Made by a program: the position numbers and the translations under genes. Below are positions 1 to 36,025 of a DNA stretch of 64,000 nucleotides, piece by piece; within the stretch, counting starts at the first letter, position 1, and every line of letters begins with the position of its first letter. The stretch comes from Klebsormidium nitens. Lineage: Eukaryota > Plantae > Klebsormidiophyceae. Under the pieces are notes generated by a model. It had not been told where the DNA came from and ran no database searches. It saw only the letters and a program-made list of their open reading frames with translations. The stretch is from NCBI GenBank assembly GCA_000708835.1, contig DF237050.1:57919-121918 (forward strand). The letters are read 5' to 3'.

Positions 1-19
1 GCCAGTGTAGCCCGAGTGG

Positions 20-103
20 CTGTTAGAAGTATTTGCGCACTGCCACTCGGGCTACACTGGCGCCAGTGTAGCCCGAGTGGCAGTGCGCAAATACTTCTAA
101 CAG
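20..103. repeat. Perfect 84-bp spacerless palindrome (42+42 bp), plus a third 20-bp arm at 1-20
   Basis: 62-103 (gccagtgtagcccgagtggcagtgcgcaaatacttctaacag) is the exact reverse complement of 20-61. Positions 1-20 are a direct copy of 62-81. Confidence 0.95.
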
Positions 104-3100
104 GCTTTCCCGTGGGCAGTCGACGGTACGAGTTTTTGGCATTCTCGACGAGCCAGGTGCGCGAGCAGGCGGTGTGGTTTTATGCACCCGAGGAGGAGGA
201 GACGGCGGATGGCGTGAGAAAGAGACTGGGGCAGTTTGAGGGTATCAACAATGTCGGTGAGTCAGCGAAGGAAAGATTTTGATGCTAAAACTTCTTCTCG
301 CTATCCTTGAATCGACTGCCGTTAAAGTATCTTGAAATTACTGAGAAACTCTGTCAAATCTAGTAAAATGAAAGGATGCACGCAACTGCGCTTCATCGAA
401 ATTATCCAGCGTGCCATCCCCCAGAGTCTGCAACTATACTTCATCAAGATACAATCTGACGACCTGATTACGACCATTCCGTAAGACCCTGGTCATGAGC
501 AATTATGAAGGATCCTGTCCGCATTCACACCCATGACAAAAAGAGATATTGAAGCTCTATTCTTTTCGGCATACTGATCATCCAATTCTCGCAGAATTTT
601 TTTTCTTGAGGGGACCGCTGCACTTGATTCCTCCTAATTTACAATCTCTCAACCACGTTTAAACTCGTCTTCCAGCCAAGAATGGGTCAGTGCTTCTCCG
701 ACACGCGCGCCACGGTCGACTTCCACCAGGAAGAGCGGATTCCGGACATCCAGCGGAACGGGTGCTGTTTCTCAGACGGGATCGGCCGCGTATCACCGGA
801 CCTCGCGGACGACATGGCGCGCGCGCTGGGCCGTCCCACGCCATCCGCATTCCAGATACGCTATGGCGGGTACAAAGGGGTTATTGCTGTATATCCCCCC
901 TGGGCAGGCCAAAAGCGGCTGGGCCTGCGCAAGAGCATGGAGAAATTCAAGAGCGCGGACAAGAACCTGGAAGTCATAACCTGGTCGCGTTTCCTGCCCG
1001 CGTTTCTCAACCGCCAGATCATCACCCTGCTCTCGACACTAGGCGTGCCGACCTCTCTCTTCCAGCAGCTGCAAGAAGACATGGTGTCAAAGCTGGGGGC
1101 GATGATGGAAAGCCGGGCGGCAGCCCTCCGGTTGCTGTGCGCCACGTGTCCCGGGGACGGCCAGTGGACGGCCAAGATGATGCTGGAGGCGGGCTTCGAC
1201 CCGCGCGGGGAGCCACACCTGTGCGCGATGCTGCGCGCGATTCAGGCGGACCAGCTGCGCGAGCTGAGGACGCGCGCGCGCATCTTCGTGCCCAGAGGGG
1301 CGTGCCTTCTAGGTGAGCCATCTGGCACTGTTTTGGTTGCAATGCATTACAGTCAGTTAACGTCAGTTAACGTCATATAACGTCAGATAACGTCATAAAT
1401 GCGAAACGCTCTCAAGATGTTCGTCAGACAAGATACAACGGTCTCTCCAAAAGAATAAACTTCTAAGAGAGGGTTTTGAATGCCTTCAAGTTCTCGCTGT
1501 GCTCTGGGTGAGAGCAGTACATCAGAGACCGGTTCCCAATCTCTCAGAGGCTTTGAATATCTGCGTCAGAACCCGGGTAGTTTAGAGATGTCGCCCTTAA
1601 AATCAAATTTCTCATCTTGGAAAGCTTGCAAAATGGTCCAGAAAGGTCTCGGAATGGCAATGTGTTCTGATAACGGCAGCAAGCCAGATTCAGGGATGTG
1701 ACCTTTGCGTGTTCTGGCAGGGTGCTTAGACGAAGACGGCGTGTTGGAAGAAGACAAAGTGTTCGTACAGCTCAGATGGCCGGAAGAAGGCGACGGGCTG
1801 GCGGGACATGTACCCACGTGGGTCAGAACGTCGAAGGGCTCGATCGCACCAAAGGTATGACGTCAGAAAGCCATAATATAAACGCTCTAATACGATCCTG
1901 TGTCTGTTCTAGATAGAAAGGTTTATCGAGGGAGGTTGATTAGTTGCGATTTCTGTAGGGTGTGGATCTGACAGTGATTTATATGCTTAGTCCTAGCGTG
2001 TCTTGGCAATCAAGCTTAAAACCCAGACTCTCAAACAATATGTTGTCTGCTAACCGATTCAATATCAACTTGGCCACAATTCTCGGAAAGAAATCGAGGC
2101 GGATCAAAGATGGCTTATATTTCTCGTCTTTCTTGACAATTTCAGTTCACGAAGTTGACGCCGCTTACGTGTGTGCAGGTTCTCACAGGCGAGGTCACAG
2201 TAGTAAAGAATCCGTGCCTGTGGCCGGGGGACGTGCGCAAGCTGACAGCTGTCGACCGGCCCCAACTGCGCCATCACATGAACACCGTCGTCTTCTCACA
2301 GAAGGTGATCTCACGACTTCAGCTGCCTGAGATCAGCTTCTTTCTTTCTTGAGAAGAGAAGATTGGGAGGGGTCAGCACGTTGTAACAGACCTGAAAGAA
2401 TGTTTATTGGTGTGAATTATTTCTGCTCCCAAGCTGAACCGTGTCCCTTCTTGAAAGTTGTAGCAAAAACATCCGTCATGTTCTTTCTCAAACGTGCACG
2501 CCATGATATGGAAACCGCTTCGCACTTACACCACTTCTTCCCGAGAGCGAAGGTAAGTTTCCCGGCAGGGCCCAAAAACGGTGTACGAACACTGTTTTCC
2601 AAGAAAAGCTGCGGGCACTTTACTGTGTCCAGTCCTTTGTTGTTCAGAGCTTCCCAGATCCTTCCACCCGCTCCAGAGTTTGAGCTTTTCACGGCAGGGT
2701 GCTCGCCCGACCCCCAGCCTGCTGTCGGACGGCGATCTGGACGGCGACAAGTTCTTTGTCTTCTGGGAGCCTGCGCTCGTGTTCCCGGGGGAGAACTGGC
2801 AGGCCCTGGACTCGCCCTGGACTACCGACCGCAACCACCCACCGTCAAAGACAAGGTGTCCGTCGAAGTAAGCTTCTGACCCGCCTCTGCAATCAAGCAA
2901 ATCTCAGACGGGAGCGGCTAAGGAACTGCATATAGTAGAAAAGACTAGTCTATGTAACTTTGTGGACCCCAATGAAAGTATCTGCTTCGTAAGGAGGCTC
3001 GGTGTTTCCTGGTCTTACAATCTGCCTGCAAGGAAGAAGCGTCGCAATAAGTCCTCGAGAGCGGGCCAGGCGATTATGAGGATTCTGTGAAGAAGAGACG

Positions 3101-4222
3101 AGAAGGCTCTCACTTTGGTTTGGCGAGCGCTGCGCAATAGGTGCTGTTTTCAGGCTGTCGAAGCAGTAGCCTCTGCTTGCTTTTTGAAGTCCTTGGATCG
3201 ATCTGTCGGGGGAGGCGATGAGTTCTTCTGTTGCGACTTCCTCTCTTCAAAGAAAGCTCAAAAAATCTCGGACATCTCTCTTCGATATGTTCGACTACTT
3301 CTTCTCTCAAGAGTACCAAGTTACAAAACTCCTGACCAATCATTGTTCCGGCTCGCTTTGACCCCTTTGAAACCGGGTACAAAGCATCTGCTCTTTTTGC
3401 CATCCCCCGCAGGACATCCAGCACTTCTTTTTGGAGTACCTAGTCAACGACAGCTTGGGCCTCATCTGCAACGCCCACGTGGTAATCGCCGACCGAGACC
3501 CCCGGGGCGCAGCGTCCGACCAGTGCCGCCAGCTGGCAGCCCTGGCGTGTACAGCTGTCGACTACCCCAAGACAGGGCACCCGGCCGTCTTGCCGCGGGA
3601 GCTGCGATCGGTACAGTACCCCGTCTTCATGGAGAAGGAAGATAAGCCCGTGTATCAATCGCAGAGCGTCCTGGGTCAGCTGTACCGGGCAGTGAAGGAG
3701 AGAACGGCGGGGGGAGGTCTAGAGCTTTCCGGTCCGAGCGCGGGAGAACTGGTGTTGGACGGAGATCTAGAGGTTCCGGGGTTCAAGGAGCACTTGGACG
3801 AAGCGTGGATTGCCAAGGGCTTTTACGACCAGGAGCTGACTGAGAGCATGCACAAGTATCGGATCGAAAGCGAGGTCCAGGTGGTGACGGGCTGCATCGG
3901 TTCGATGTCGACGTTCCACCGAGTGAAGCCCATCAAGATCAAGGAAAGGATCCGGGAAGCATTTGGTGCCGTCACTAAGAAGGCGCGGGAGGTTTTCGAG
4001 TACGGTCTCGGGGTAGTGGACCGAGAGGAGCCCCGCCCGGAAGAGAGAATAAGAGATGAGGAGCGGGTGGCGAAAGCGTATGCGTATTACTACGTGACGT
4101 ACAGCCGGGATTGGCGGGAGCGGAAGATTGCGGAGGGGGAGGTCGAAGAGTCGGACAGTGTTCTGCTGAGCTTTCCTTGGGTTGTGGCCGATGTGCTGGG
4201 AAGCCTGAAAGCTCGAAAGTAG
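84..4222 (+). CDS. RDR: RNA-dependent RNA polymerase, eukaryotic RDR-alpha (RDR1/2/6-like), 5'-partial; two frameshifts as written (possible pseudogene or assembly error)
   Basis: Exons at about 84/104-256, 676-1312, 1721-1854, 2179-2304, 2698-2867 and 3413-4222, with GT/AG ends. Motifs: RRYEFLAFSTSQVR, RMGQCFS, SAFQIRYGGYKGV, FLNRQIITLLS, GCLDEDG, KNPCLWPGD, DGDLDGD, NDSLGLICNAH, AVDYPKTG, LSFPW. Confidence 0.93.
1351..1398. repeat. 10-bp tandem repeat, about 5 copies (cgtcagttaa), in an RDR intron
   Basis: agtcagttaa cgtcagttaa cgtcatataa cgtcagataa cgtcataa. Confidence 0.9.
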
Positions 4223-5469: not shown

Positions 5470-7068
5470 CTAGTGCGAGGATGTGAAGTATCCTGCCATA
5501 ACGGGCGCCGCAACCGCGCTGGACATGAGGAAGCTGCTCATTTTGAACTGTCTGCGATCGTCGGTGGAGGGGATGTCGAGGACCGCGGTCGGACGCTGAC
5601 GGAAGAGCACGAAAGCGTAGCGGTGCGGCAGGTCGCCTTTGGGCTGGATGGGCTCATAGGAGGCGACCACTTTGCCAACCTTTGCCGGATCTGAAAGCAA
5701 GGTCAGTGAGTAGGCAATTAGTTTGTGATGACTTGGATGAAACATAGCGTGGATGAAACATAGGTGACAATATAATACTGGAATCGGGTACACGCAGGGA
5801 CAAAAAGAGTACGAAGAAGCTTTGCACATTAGGCGAAGCAACTGATGACGCAACCTCAGACGAGGAGAAGATTTTCCGAGTACTATGCAAGGAACAGATA
5901 TGCCTTCTCAAAGTATATTTCATGGCAATCCCTATTTCCATCTCAAAGGCCAATCTCGCATGTCTTATGATGATTTCCCTGCTTTCAACGAGCCTGATGG
6001 AACGGGCGACTTCTCACCCATCAGAGCTGCGTCGCTGGTCGCTTGGGGCCCCGGGATGTTGGTCACGAGCCAGTGCAGGTATTCGCCGTTCCCCGGGTTG
6101 GTCGGGTCGGGGGAGTCCAGGTCGACGAGCACCACAGTGTACAGGTGGGACTGCGCCTCGACGAAGTTCTCGTGGATGCTCAGCATGGGGGAGGACTTGA
6201 GATCAGCGGAGGCGTACCTCTCGCCGTTCTCGATCTGTAGAGTGAAACGCAAAGACTCCATCAATGCTTTGGCCATCAATGTATCGACACACTTTTCATG
6301 GATGCTCGTGAATATAACACAACGACTCCATCCGTTGTTTGATCACCATACAAAATTTTGTAGTATTCTATATATGAGAGGAAGAATTTCTATTTCCTTT
6401 CGAAGCTCAATCTGCGGTTGAACCATCGAGACATCGGTTCCCTCTTTGCTTTCCGTTCGTTTGTGGGGTTTGAAAGTCACCAACGAACGGAACTCTGTTT
6501 GTTTTCTGTTTCTCGGCGGATGTTTGCATTTCTGTGGTTTGTCATCCTCCATCTGTTGATAAACTGTGACAAACTGACGTCCTCTTTTCGGTCTGCGGAC
6601 TGGTCAGCATCCCAAGATTGAACCTCCTCGGCACAGGAAAAAATCAGCTAGGGTCTTCAGCGACGAGGCTTTCAGAGAATATCTGACAGAACGACCATTT
6701 CACAGGACTCAACTTTCTTGCATGCTCCTCGACGCTAGTCAATCAAGAACTCAGAAGCTCACTTTATTCTTCGTCAGCATCTCACAGGTGCTCTCAAGCG
6801 CCGACAAGATCTTGATTGCAGGATATCATCCCATATGCAAACCAAATGGGAAGTTCCTGCTGGCCACTTTTACCTGCAAGGTTCCCTTGTCTGTTCCAAA
6901 GACCAGATTCAGTTGTGCGCTCGGGTTGAACGTGTCCAAGACGTCTGGAACGATTCCTGCCGCTTCCAGTTCGCTCATCAACGTTGGAGAGGCAGTTGTG
7001 CTGGCGAACGGTGTTGACGGAGCTGCCGGAACGACGGAAGCAACTTGAGTTGCGATCGGTGGCAACAT
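5470..7068 (-). CDS. Phosphatidylethanolamine-binding protein (PEBP) family; 3 exons; start codon uncertain
   Basis: Exons about 7068-6874, 6234-6018 and 5690-5470, with compatible phases. Motifs: GIVPDVLDTF, YTVVLVDLDSP, EYLHWLVTNIPG, HRYAFVLFRQ. Confidence 0.9.
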
Positions 7069-8350
7069 GGTTTGGCAAAACCTCTCAGCATAGAGAAACA
7101 ACTTTTTCAGGTAATAGTGAAGAGCACACGCACACCTTTTAAATGCTTGGGCAAAGAATGTTTCCCTGACTTAACTGGATAGAGTGTGGGCAGCATTTGA
7201 GTACAGACGCCTCCAACCAAATTTGCTGCTGAGGCGATTATCAGAGGACTGGTGCCAGTTGAGAATGGAGCATGTACCAGACCTAAGGGCAAATAGAAAG
7301 GCTCTGTGAAGCACACGAACTAGTCTTCATGTTGCTTCATGTGGCGGGACAACTTTTTAGTCCAGATATTTGCACAGCCAAATAAGAAGATCTTTTCCTG
7401 GATCATTCCTAAACAGCCGAGAGAGAAATACCCCAACCTCATCAACTGAGCCTTAATGTGATGCTGGCCGTCACTTCAACGAAGATCCACATAAGTTTGT
7501 AATGCACATATTGACGCTCTCAGGTTGTTGGTGTTTCCAATTGAGCAACCATGCCAAAAGTTAAGTGCACAGACCTGGTTGGTCAGTCTGACTGGATTCC
7601 TCTACTTGAGTCCGCGGACCAGCGCTTGTTGCAGTTCCTCCTGCGAGAATCATCTTGCACATTATGATGAAGTCCAATTCACACAGAATTGATGGAAACT
7701 CCACCTATGTCAGCTTCTGATTACACGAGTAGCTGCAGGCTGCGCTGAATATCCAGCATCTATGAAGGCCAGCGACCGCCTGCAAAACCGAAGCCACCGT
7801 CCGTAGCCAAATGGAACTGGAATTCAGACCATTGCTCCTGTCCAAAAGTTCTATATTACGATTTTGCACATGAATCTACTTCTTGCACGACCTCCTCTTC
7901 TATCAGAAAGTTCAAGCTAACTCATGCCAAATAGCGAGCAAAGCTAGATCAGGAAATGTAGAATCCAAAGTGGTCAACATTTGCAACTCACCCTGCGTTG
8001 ATGCAGCCGTCTGTTCTTCAATTCTCCCCTGTGTGGAAGCTTCTTCCCCTGCCATCTCTGACTTTTCTCCTCCCGGGTGAGCCATTGGCACAGTTTGCAG
8101 CTGCAAATGATGATTTTTTCAAGTTGCTCCTTCTCAGATGACTTGCGCTCTTCTAGATTGCAGCTCACGTTCGGAGGTGATGGTCACAATGTGTCAACAC
8201 AAAGCAGGGCGCTGCAGCATCTGTGCCTTCGCTTCCAAAGCAACTTCCTTCTTCTGAAGTCTGCTCAGACTGCTGCATTGGACACCAGTTCTGCGCTCCA
8301 AGCAAGCGGCGCCAGGGTTTCCCACAGCCGGCAGCTACACTTGGACCTGG

Positions 8351-33536: not shown

Positions 33537-36025
33537 ATGAAAGGCGTCCGTGGCCGGCCGTTGCCCCTATCGTCTCTGAATCACATCAGCAGGAATTGCA
33601 GAGACATCCTTGCATCCGTGGCCTTCTATGAGGTGGGTTTGAAATGATGTTGCTGGTTTTGCTATGGCGCATGCGCTGGTTTTGGCTTCCTTGTTCAAAA
33701 TGTAGGAGCCTTTGCAGCTGGGGGGAGCTGTTACGAACCACTCAATGACCGGTTTGTCAGGGAACAGCAACATCAGATGTCCACCAGCCAGTCGCCAGCC
33801 AGTCACCAGCCAATTGCCAGCCAATCAGGTTTTTGACCATATAAAAGCGCATGTGCTGGTTTGCAATGCTGATTGTCATCAGGTATCTCAGTGTTTAAGA
33901 GAATGATCAAAGCAAAAAGTTAATAGTAGCTCAGGGAGCAGGCTATCATGCCATGGAATTTCCACATTTTGGTACGCTATGGAGAGTCCTGGATTTTTCA
34001 ACATTTTCAGGTCATTGATATGTTATGGCCTTCATGCACCTGATGGACTTTACCCTTTTCTTTTGTCCCTTGAATCTACTGCTTGATAGGCCATTGGCAC
34101 CACTGTTGTCTCAAACATTGTTTTGCTGCACAGCTTGGTAAGTTTTGCATATGGAAGCTCGTTGTGAGTCAATGGCTGGGAATGTGGCCCGTGGGCGCTT
34201 TGCCAAGAATGTACAGCAACAGAGGCCCCCTGCTTTGCATTAGCACACGTCAGGTGCCTCTCTCAGCTTTCACTCTCTCGTATACAGGATGTGCTAGGAT
34301 TCATTCAGATTGTGCGTCCATCCAGATTCGACTTTGACGGTGCCTGGTGAGGAATCCTTCTTCCATCTGATTTTAATGCACAATTTGTGCCAGAAGCCTT
34401 CGCCTGTTTCCTAGTGAAGCAGTTTTTCTCACTATTGACGTGATCAGGGTCAGCTGCAATCGCTTTCAGTGAACAGATTTAAGCAAGGGCAGACAAGCGA
34501 TATTGTGGATAAAGAAGGTTTGACCACGTTGGAACATCTGCATTATGCGGAGAAGGTTGCATTTTCCGTTCGTTGAGCACGTTGATGTGGATGGAATAAC
34601 CATTGACGCTATCAGGCAATCTGTACTCTGCACTTTCGGGTGCTCTGTACAATTGGACCTAGCAAGGGTTCTCAGAAACCAACCTGGTGATGCCAATCGC
34701 GTGCAGGTTATTCCAGTATGGCATAGGCCTTCACCTTCTGAAAGAAGAGACCGACGAGGGTCTGGCACTACTTGAGCGCACTCGGTGCAAGGCCATTGAT
34801 CCTAGGGCGGATCATATATCATTCCAGGTGTGTGTCGTGCAGTTAGTGAGCAGGACCTTGTCATATGTGATGATGGTTTCTTGGTTTTCTCTTTCGCTCA
34901 TGCTATCATGAAACACTGGCTCACTAAGTAAGGGCGTCCTATTCTGAATTAAGTGCAACAGAGACTCCGCTTTCATTTTAAAGGTCTCAAATTCTGAATT
35001 TGCAGGCGGACAATACTGGAGTGGTTGAGCAGCGCTTGCGAGAATTTGGAGTCGAGTACAAGAAACAGACAGTGATTGAGGGCAACATTCGGGTGCAGCA
35101 GGTGAGGATCAAAGCGGTGCCTCGAAGTCAGCGAAATGGGGTCATTTGGGTGTTTGTAAGCTTAACTTGTGTGTTGATGTGTTTGGGGATATTTAGAGTT
35201 GTACCGAACACAGTAAAGTTTGTCTTGAAATCTTACTGATGAGGGCATCCAGGCTGGCATGAAAAGAGCTCCAGGACCAGACACTCTTAACTTCCGGACA
35301 ACGTACTTCGACATGCAAATACCACAGGCATCCTTGAGAATCACGAGGTTTGCTCACCAAGTTCCTCTCCTTCGACTCAGTCTATGTCGCCGCCAGTTGC
35401 AGGTAGTTGCAAATCATTTTCGATTCTGACAATAAGGACCTAATAAGAGTTTGGTTGACGATTTCCAATACATTTGACCCCTGCGTCATTCGAGCTGCTT
35501 CGTCCCTTGGTTCCGATTTGAAAGGTTTCTTTTTGAGTTTGGCCATCACTTCAGATCTAGGCATCGTCAAGTTGGAATCAATCTACCTAGAGTCACCACG
35601 CACCTTAGAAGGCTTTCGTTCCCTCAGTCTATCCATCTTCAGCTTGCGACAAATCTGGCCTGCACCTGGCGCACGTGAGAGATTGTTTGTTCCTTCGAGG
35701 CACTTACGAAGTCCCCCGTTTTTTGCTGCAGATTTTCTTCCACGATCCAGACGGCCACATGATCGAGATTTGCGACTGTGAGGCCCTGCCAATCATCCCG
35801 CTGTCAGGAGACTGTTTGACCTGCCCAGCCCGCTTCAAGCAACGGAGGCTTGCGCATGCGAAGGAGGAAAAGATGATCGAGAACGCGCAGAACGAGTCGT
35901 TGGCCGCTACAATCGAGGAAGATTTGAAATGGGGAGTTCGAGCATCACGTCAGGTCGGACTTCCCAAGACGGCAAGTTGTGGGGATATTGCTGGCAACGA
36001 TAGCATGTTTCCTGTGTGTGCTTAG
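33537..36025 (+). CDS. VOC / glyoxalase I-like (lactoylglutathione lyase family) protein; start codon uncertain
   Basis: Exons about 33537-33632, 34288-34346, 34707-34827, 35007-35102 and 35731-36025. Spliced product: LPLSSLNHISRNC..FYE/DVLGF..RPSRFDFDGAW/LFQYGIGLHLL..DHISFQ/..IFFHDPDGHMIEICDC. Confidence 0.9.

Follow-up and report, generated by a model that had tools for sequence, protein, structure and literature searches.

Can a polymerase gene whose catalytic core is read in the wrong frame still encode a protein? The question is posed by an RNA-dependent RNA polymerase (RDR) gene at one end of the window, as we call the whole 64,000-nt stretch of Klebsormidium nitens contig DF237050.1 (assembly GCA_000708835.1) that was analyzed. 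According to a preliminary description of this DNA, the gene lacks about 11 nt where its first two window exons meet and gains 11 nt through a duplication further downstream, such that the spliced mRNA would encode a full-length product with an Arg/Gly-rich peptide from another frame in place of the catalytic core. Three explanations were offered: an RDR variant that is catalytically dead, a pseudogene whose state is masked by a compensating indel, and an assembly error.

The window holds the 3' two-thirds of an RDR6-like gene, at positions 1-4222 of the forward strand. An exact cluster look-up returned GAQ82123.1 (KFL_001010085) of K. nitens, which together with GAQ82122.1 makes up the GenBank models covering the gene. 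To follow the gene upstream of the window we used a fetched stretch of the same locus, L002, which is the same as the window over 14,222 bases (L002 position = window position + 9319). Translated in the RDR frame, the window exons match the Pfam family PF05183 (RdRP) over profile positions 68-582, with E-values of 3e-10, 5e-60, 9e-14, 2e-09 and 2e-27 for the exon pieces. Exon 1 ends at profile position 118, and exon 2 alone scores 204 bits over profile positions 127-349; the shifted-frame translation of exon 2 has no match in Pfam. The database searches were made with single exons, and joined exon models were used locally, for frame and stop counts, dN/dS and alignment to fetched loci.

The gene shares its domain order (PF05183 with PH_RDR2, RDR6_2nd and RdRP_head) with plant RDRs of the RDR6/SHL2 type, and the motifs NVAK-x-AAR-MGQ, KNPCLxPGD and DLDGD of these proteins are also encoded in the K. 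nitens RDR frame. Sequence identity with RDR6/RDR1 proteins of land plants amounts to 40-52%, and the best named matches are in Marchantia, Chara and maize (SHL2). Unlike these relatives, the K. nitens copy offers no continuous reading frame, as it carries five small frame-breaking indels and an inserted element.

All splice sites of the window exon model (Table 1) are canonical GT-AG sites. Joined literally (256/676, 1312/1721, 1854/2179, 2304/2698 and 2867/3413), the exons give 675 codons plus a stop with no internal stops, in a spliced sequence whose length is divisible by three. This literal frame reads NNVAK, continues into an Arg/Gly-rich stretch and rejoins the RDR frame at ...LDYRPQPPTVKDKVSVEDIQHFF, and its first AUG does not come before exon 3. 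In the core (682-2812, 335 codons, including DLDGD), the RDR frame is likewise open; it is discontinuous with the head and tail exons, and the literal ORF reads the DLDGD stretch in the shifted frame. The preliminary description had thus correctly traced a shifted frame that is free of stops across the core and rejoins after the duplication, and the four ORFs it named are present in the ORF list. It had also named cryptic in-frame donors at 254 and 261. The GT at 253-254 is indeed in frame and would yield NNPRMGQ, while the GT at 261 is out of frame.

Table 1. Features of the RDR locus in window coordinates.
Feature	Position	Strand	Remarks
Inserted mobile element, right end	1-102		Perfect 84-nt spacerless palindrome, arms 20-61 and 62-103; ends ...CTTCTAACA at 102
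Target-site duplication GGCTT, right copy	103-107	+	Left copy at L002 8163-8167; present once in the uninterrupted orthologue
RDR exon E1, 3' part (...FPVGSRRYEFLAFS...GINNV)	108-256	+	PF05183 68-118; 81% nucleotide identity to L001 5474-5634; donor gtgagt at 257
RDR exon 2	676-1312	+	11-nt deletion between 680 and 681; codons for C-A-A-R of NVAKCAARMGQ lost
RDR exon 3	1721-1854	+	Exon model, orthologue alignment
RDR exon 4 (KNPCLWPGDVR...)	2179-2304	+	PF05183, exon model, orthologue alignment
5' extension of exon 5, 40 nt	2658-2697	+	Used only by GenBank model GAQ82123.1
RDR exon 5	2698-2867	+	Catalytic DLDGD at 2734-2748 in the RDR frame
11-nt tandem duplication (GCCCTGGACT C GCCCTGGACT)	2803-2823	+	Just after DLDGD; absent in L001 and both outgroups
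Last RDR exon (RdRP C-terminal part and RdRP_head)	3413-4222	+	Stop at 4220-4222

The GenBank annotation cuts the RDR gene into two models. GAQ82122.1 is the 5' half-model, and GAQ82123.1 (P0151), with 636 residues, is the exact translation of 682-1312, 1721-1854, 2179-2304, 2658-2867 and 3413-4222. The acceptor that this second model takes at 2658, 40 nt upstream of 2698, puts exon 5 in the shifted frame, and for this reason the deposited protein lacks DLDGD. The catalytic DxDGD loop is therefore found in neither product encoded by the locus, be it the literal ORF or P0151.

The intact state of the gene can be read from an orthologue. Searching with exon 2, we found a 10-kb contig (L001) in Logan SRR23617307, from a related Klebsormidium-like alga, whose exon 2 ORF is 94% identical at the protein level. 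The two loci are syntenic, with the same Clp gene upstream, and they share the same seven exons and splice sites, with exon nucleotide identities of 80-91%. In L001 the homologous GT-AG sites join an uninterrupted ORF of 1199 codons that has none of the lesions of the K. nitens copy. As outgroups we used two metagenome contigs (L003 and L004; JGI 3300060285) with about 65% protein identity. Each of these carries two RDR copies in opposite orientation, and the copies used have frame changes of their own inside exon 2 (at ~7575-7590 and 7841 in L003 and at ~7056-7063 and 7140 in L004), with an in-frame stop as well in L003; these loci are either further RDR pseudogenes or contigs with indel errors.

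Measured against the orthologue, the K. nitens gene is broken in at least six places, and no uninterrupted ORF runs from the N-terminal domains to RdRP_head. The first exon of the gene has a 1-nt deletion at L002 6713, and beyond it the ORF that begins with the native ATG (L002 6132) comes to a stop at codon 209. The second exon of the gene has an 11-nt deletion (L002 7872/7873), an 11-nt tandem duplication (~L002 8110-8131) and a mobile-element insertion with a 5-bp target duplication that extends from L002 8168 to window 102; between the deletion and the duplication, the literal frame is interrupted by a stop at L002 8106. The remaining two lesions are the 11 nt missing at the start of window exon 2 and the duplication after DLDGD. 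The frame accordingly changes at L002 6713, 7872 and 8119 and at window positions 680 and 2813. Both outgroup loci agree with L001 at the site of each of the five small lesions, all of which are hence derived in K. nitens. Next to the 1-nt deletion, an in-frame 6-nt tandem duplication (GAACCA GAACCA, encoding EPEP) lies at ~L002 6637-6648, within a linker in the first RDR exon where conservation is poor.

Both window lesions turned out much as they had first been described. At the exon 2 acceptor, where L001 reads ...cag/CCAAG TGCGCGGCCAG GATGGG (NVAKCAARMGQ) and the outgroups agree, the window reads ...cag/CCAAG AATGGG, so that the missing stretch is indeed 11 nt long. A microexon providing these bases was found nowhere in 257-675, as the preliminary description had already noted, and L001 shows that they belong to exon 2. 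The converse possibility, one extra base in the window rather than 11 missing ones, is ruled out by the true L001 acceptor, which lies 12 nt further upstream. At the second site, GCCCTGGACT occurs at 2803-2812 and again at 2814-2823, which confirms a repeat spacing of 11, and L001 continues as ...NWEALDYRPQPP without the duplication.

The largest lesion lies just outside and at the very edge of the window. Where the RDR exon breaks off, L002 has an 82-nt palindrome (8168-8249) that is identical to the one at the right end of the insert; the insert has TG...CA termini, starting with TGTTAG... and finishing with ...CTAACA. Its interior is a scaffold gap of 1048 N directly upstream of window position 1, and element and gap together span L002 8168-9421. 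The direct 5-bp target duplication is not something that assemblers invent, and at least one disabling lesion thus looks real. The TG...CA ends, the 5-bp target-site duplication and the terminal palindromes (window 1-102, L002 8168-8271) resemble those of an integrase-type (LTR- or Ginger-like) or foldback element; no further copy of the terminal sequence is present within the window. We also considered the insert as an intron; by our own count, splicing at the single plausible GT...AG pair would leave +5 nt, and the frame would stay broken.

Which of the two frames is under purifying selection, a point raised in the preliminary description, has a clear answer. Substitutions between K. nitens and L001 follow the RDR frame, not the shifted frame: RDR-frame dN/dS is 0.141 over 1169 codons and 0.075 in the core (dS 0.405), and no nonsense substitution has occurred in the 1169 codons of the K. 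nitens RDR frame. Polarization of the amino-acid changes placed 29 on the K. nitens branch and 20 on the L001 branch (p = 0.25), with 5 and 7, respectively, in the core, counts that fit either very recent death or no death. Since purifying selection has acted on the RDR frame and changes are not in excess on the K. nitens branch, the lesions must be of very recent origin or in part artefacts of assembly. A rough estimate from the replacement counts suggests that constraint would have been lost in about the final tenth of the K. nitens branch, in which case a handful of indels would be expected and nonsense substitutions would still be absent.

Together, these data suggest that the locus is probably a unitary pseudogene of an RDR6-like gene that was inactivated recently in K. 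nitens NIES-2285 and has been annotated as two genes. Among the three explanations first offered, this one is best supported: the orthologue at this locus is intact, and the disabling lesions are derived relative to it, as is expected of a pseudogene. The lesions would then be real in the organism and the locus presumably translated into nothing useful; as deposited, the sequence cannot yield a functional polymerase. Along the gene the lesions run in the order 1-nt deletion, -11, +11, element insertion, -11, +11. The last -11/+11 pair cancels in length, leaving the head and tail exons of the window in a shared frame, and the gene predictor split the gene in two and took the acceptor at 2658 to keep an ORF. 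Young unitary pseudogenes with frameshifts "rescued" by a predictor likewise have paired indels that restore the frame, and here too the gene was split and an upstream acceptor chosen. Unlike in such pseudogenes, the four larger indels of the K. nitens copy are all 11 nt long, and it has as yet no nonsense substitutions. Ordinary decay does not predict that four of five small indels should measure exactly 11 nt in the order -, +, -, +, and the identical size of these four independent-looking indels is left unexplained by a pseudogene.

A functional gene with assembly errors would look much the same, having no nonsense substitution and no significant excess of replacements. It is accordingly possible, although we think it rather unlikely, that the small lesions, in whole or in part, arose as errors in the 2014 Newbler 454/Illumina assembly and that the organism has a working RDR here. 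With the same reserve, one can picture segments placed 11 nt out of register, losing 11 nt at one edge and repeating 11 at the other: the two -11/+11 pairs have the same orientation, as pasting with an 11-nt offset would give. The low dN/dS and stop-free RDR frame are those of a working gene, the 1-nt deletion sits in an AA run and would be a typical 454 error, and the locus adjoins a scaffold gap with palindromic contig ends on either side, which makes it hard to assemble. The duplicated 11-mers, however, agree at 10 of 11 bases and not at all of them, as a copy-paste overlap would, and the neighboring Clp gene aligns to its orthologue without coding indels. Nor is there a general excess of period-11 duplications in the window, which speaks against a genome-wide +11 duplication artefact, and the target-site duplication of the element is difficult to attribute to an assembler. 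We know of no 11-nt offset artefact of Newbler. The main-text methods of the genome paper give Newbler with 454 and Illumina reads and name no gap-closing tool. Exact-ORF and cluster look-ups, word searches and a metagenome scan found no independent K. nitens reads, contigs, ORFs or transcripts of the locus.

The recurrent 11 nt may have a cause of its own, and we raise as a doubtful suggestion that the indels are scars of a single ruler-like process that struck this locus repeatedly, a candidate being a nuclease or transposase that makes 11-nt staggered breaks followed by fill-in (+11) or trimming (-11). Both lost 11-mers fit NGCGCNNNCAG. We did not find such a signature described, and in the improbable event that this process is real, it would have disabled an RNA-silencing gene. 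The match itself comprises 8 of 11 bases common to AGCGCTTTCAG (lost at L002 7872/7873) and TGCGCGGCCAG (lost at 680/681; taken from L001), each of them followed by G; it could be chance or a target motif.

There remains the open shifted frame itself. Under synonymous shuffles of the sequence, its freedom from stops has P = 0.008, a value to be read with the knowledge that this null is too strict, as it expects 8 stops for the tail exon against an observed 4. In the intact L001, these 335 codons contain only 1 stop in the shifted frame (the whole coding sequence, of 1200 codons, contains 10), and the open frame in K. nitens is therefore unremarkable. The preliminary description had remarked that in GC3-rich DNA chance often leaves this frame open, and our counts bear this out: the 335 shifted codons are free of stops because third positions in the core are about 79% G+C (GC3 = 0.79) and rarely T (T3 = 0.075). 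Given the miscalibrated null and the L001 stop count, we reject the idea that selection holds the frame open. The locus also differs from cases of overprinting or dual coding, in that L001 has a stop in the alternative frame and lacks the connecting indels. The Arg/Gly-rich peptide bears no sign of selection.

The full-length mRNA product without a premature stop that was first proposed does not hold up, as the native ORF ends at codon 209, the element and the 1048-N gap break the exon that feeds the window, and no AUG precedes exon 3. It is thus very improbable that the locus is expressed as a dead RDR variant, a long protein that escapes nonsense-mediated decay with its core replaced by the shifted-frame peptide: its 675 open codons across window exons 1-6 and their shuffle P value would favor it, but the single stop in L001, substitutions that track the RDR frame, the stop enclosed by the upstream -11/+11 pair and a peptide that matches no Pfam family all count against it. 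Almost certainly, the open shifted frame represents no new protein and is a by-product of a gene that died very recently (or that is partly mis-assembled).

The outcome bears on RDR inventories. A published small-RNA survey lists only two RDR homologues for K. nitens, GAQ82122.1 (this locus) and GAQ86307.1 (PMC7994812, supplementary file 3), and a preprint gives the species one RDR6 and one further RDR. GAQ86307.1 is known to us from the literature list only, and no intact K. nitens RDR paralogue was found among ten of the best matches, those with clusters checked. Our literature search found no paper that names the locus or SRA run SRR23617307. If the locus is dead, K. nitens, a widely used reference alga for the streptophytes, has one functional RDR fewer than assumed, and both deposited protein models are artefacts to be kept out of alignments and motif surveys. 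Should the lesions be assembly errors, it is the reference sequence that needs correction, along with both models. Either way, the pattern of a compensated frameshift with an open alternative frame is here no evidence for a new protein, and the practical consequence is a correction to RDR gene counts and alignments.

Two further repeats were seen in the window. A third period-11 match, at 33782, belongs to a non-coding minisatellite (33772-33826, CACCAGCCAGT-like, about 4 copies) that is unrelated to the RDR lesions. In intron 2 of the RDR gene, positions 1347-1396 consist of five tandem 10-nt units of the type TTAACGTCAG / ATAACGTCAT, whose ACGTCA core resembles TGACGTCA.
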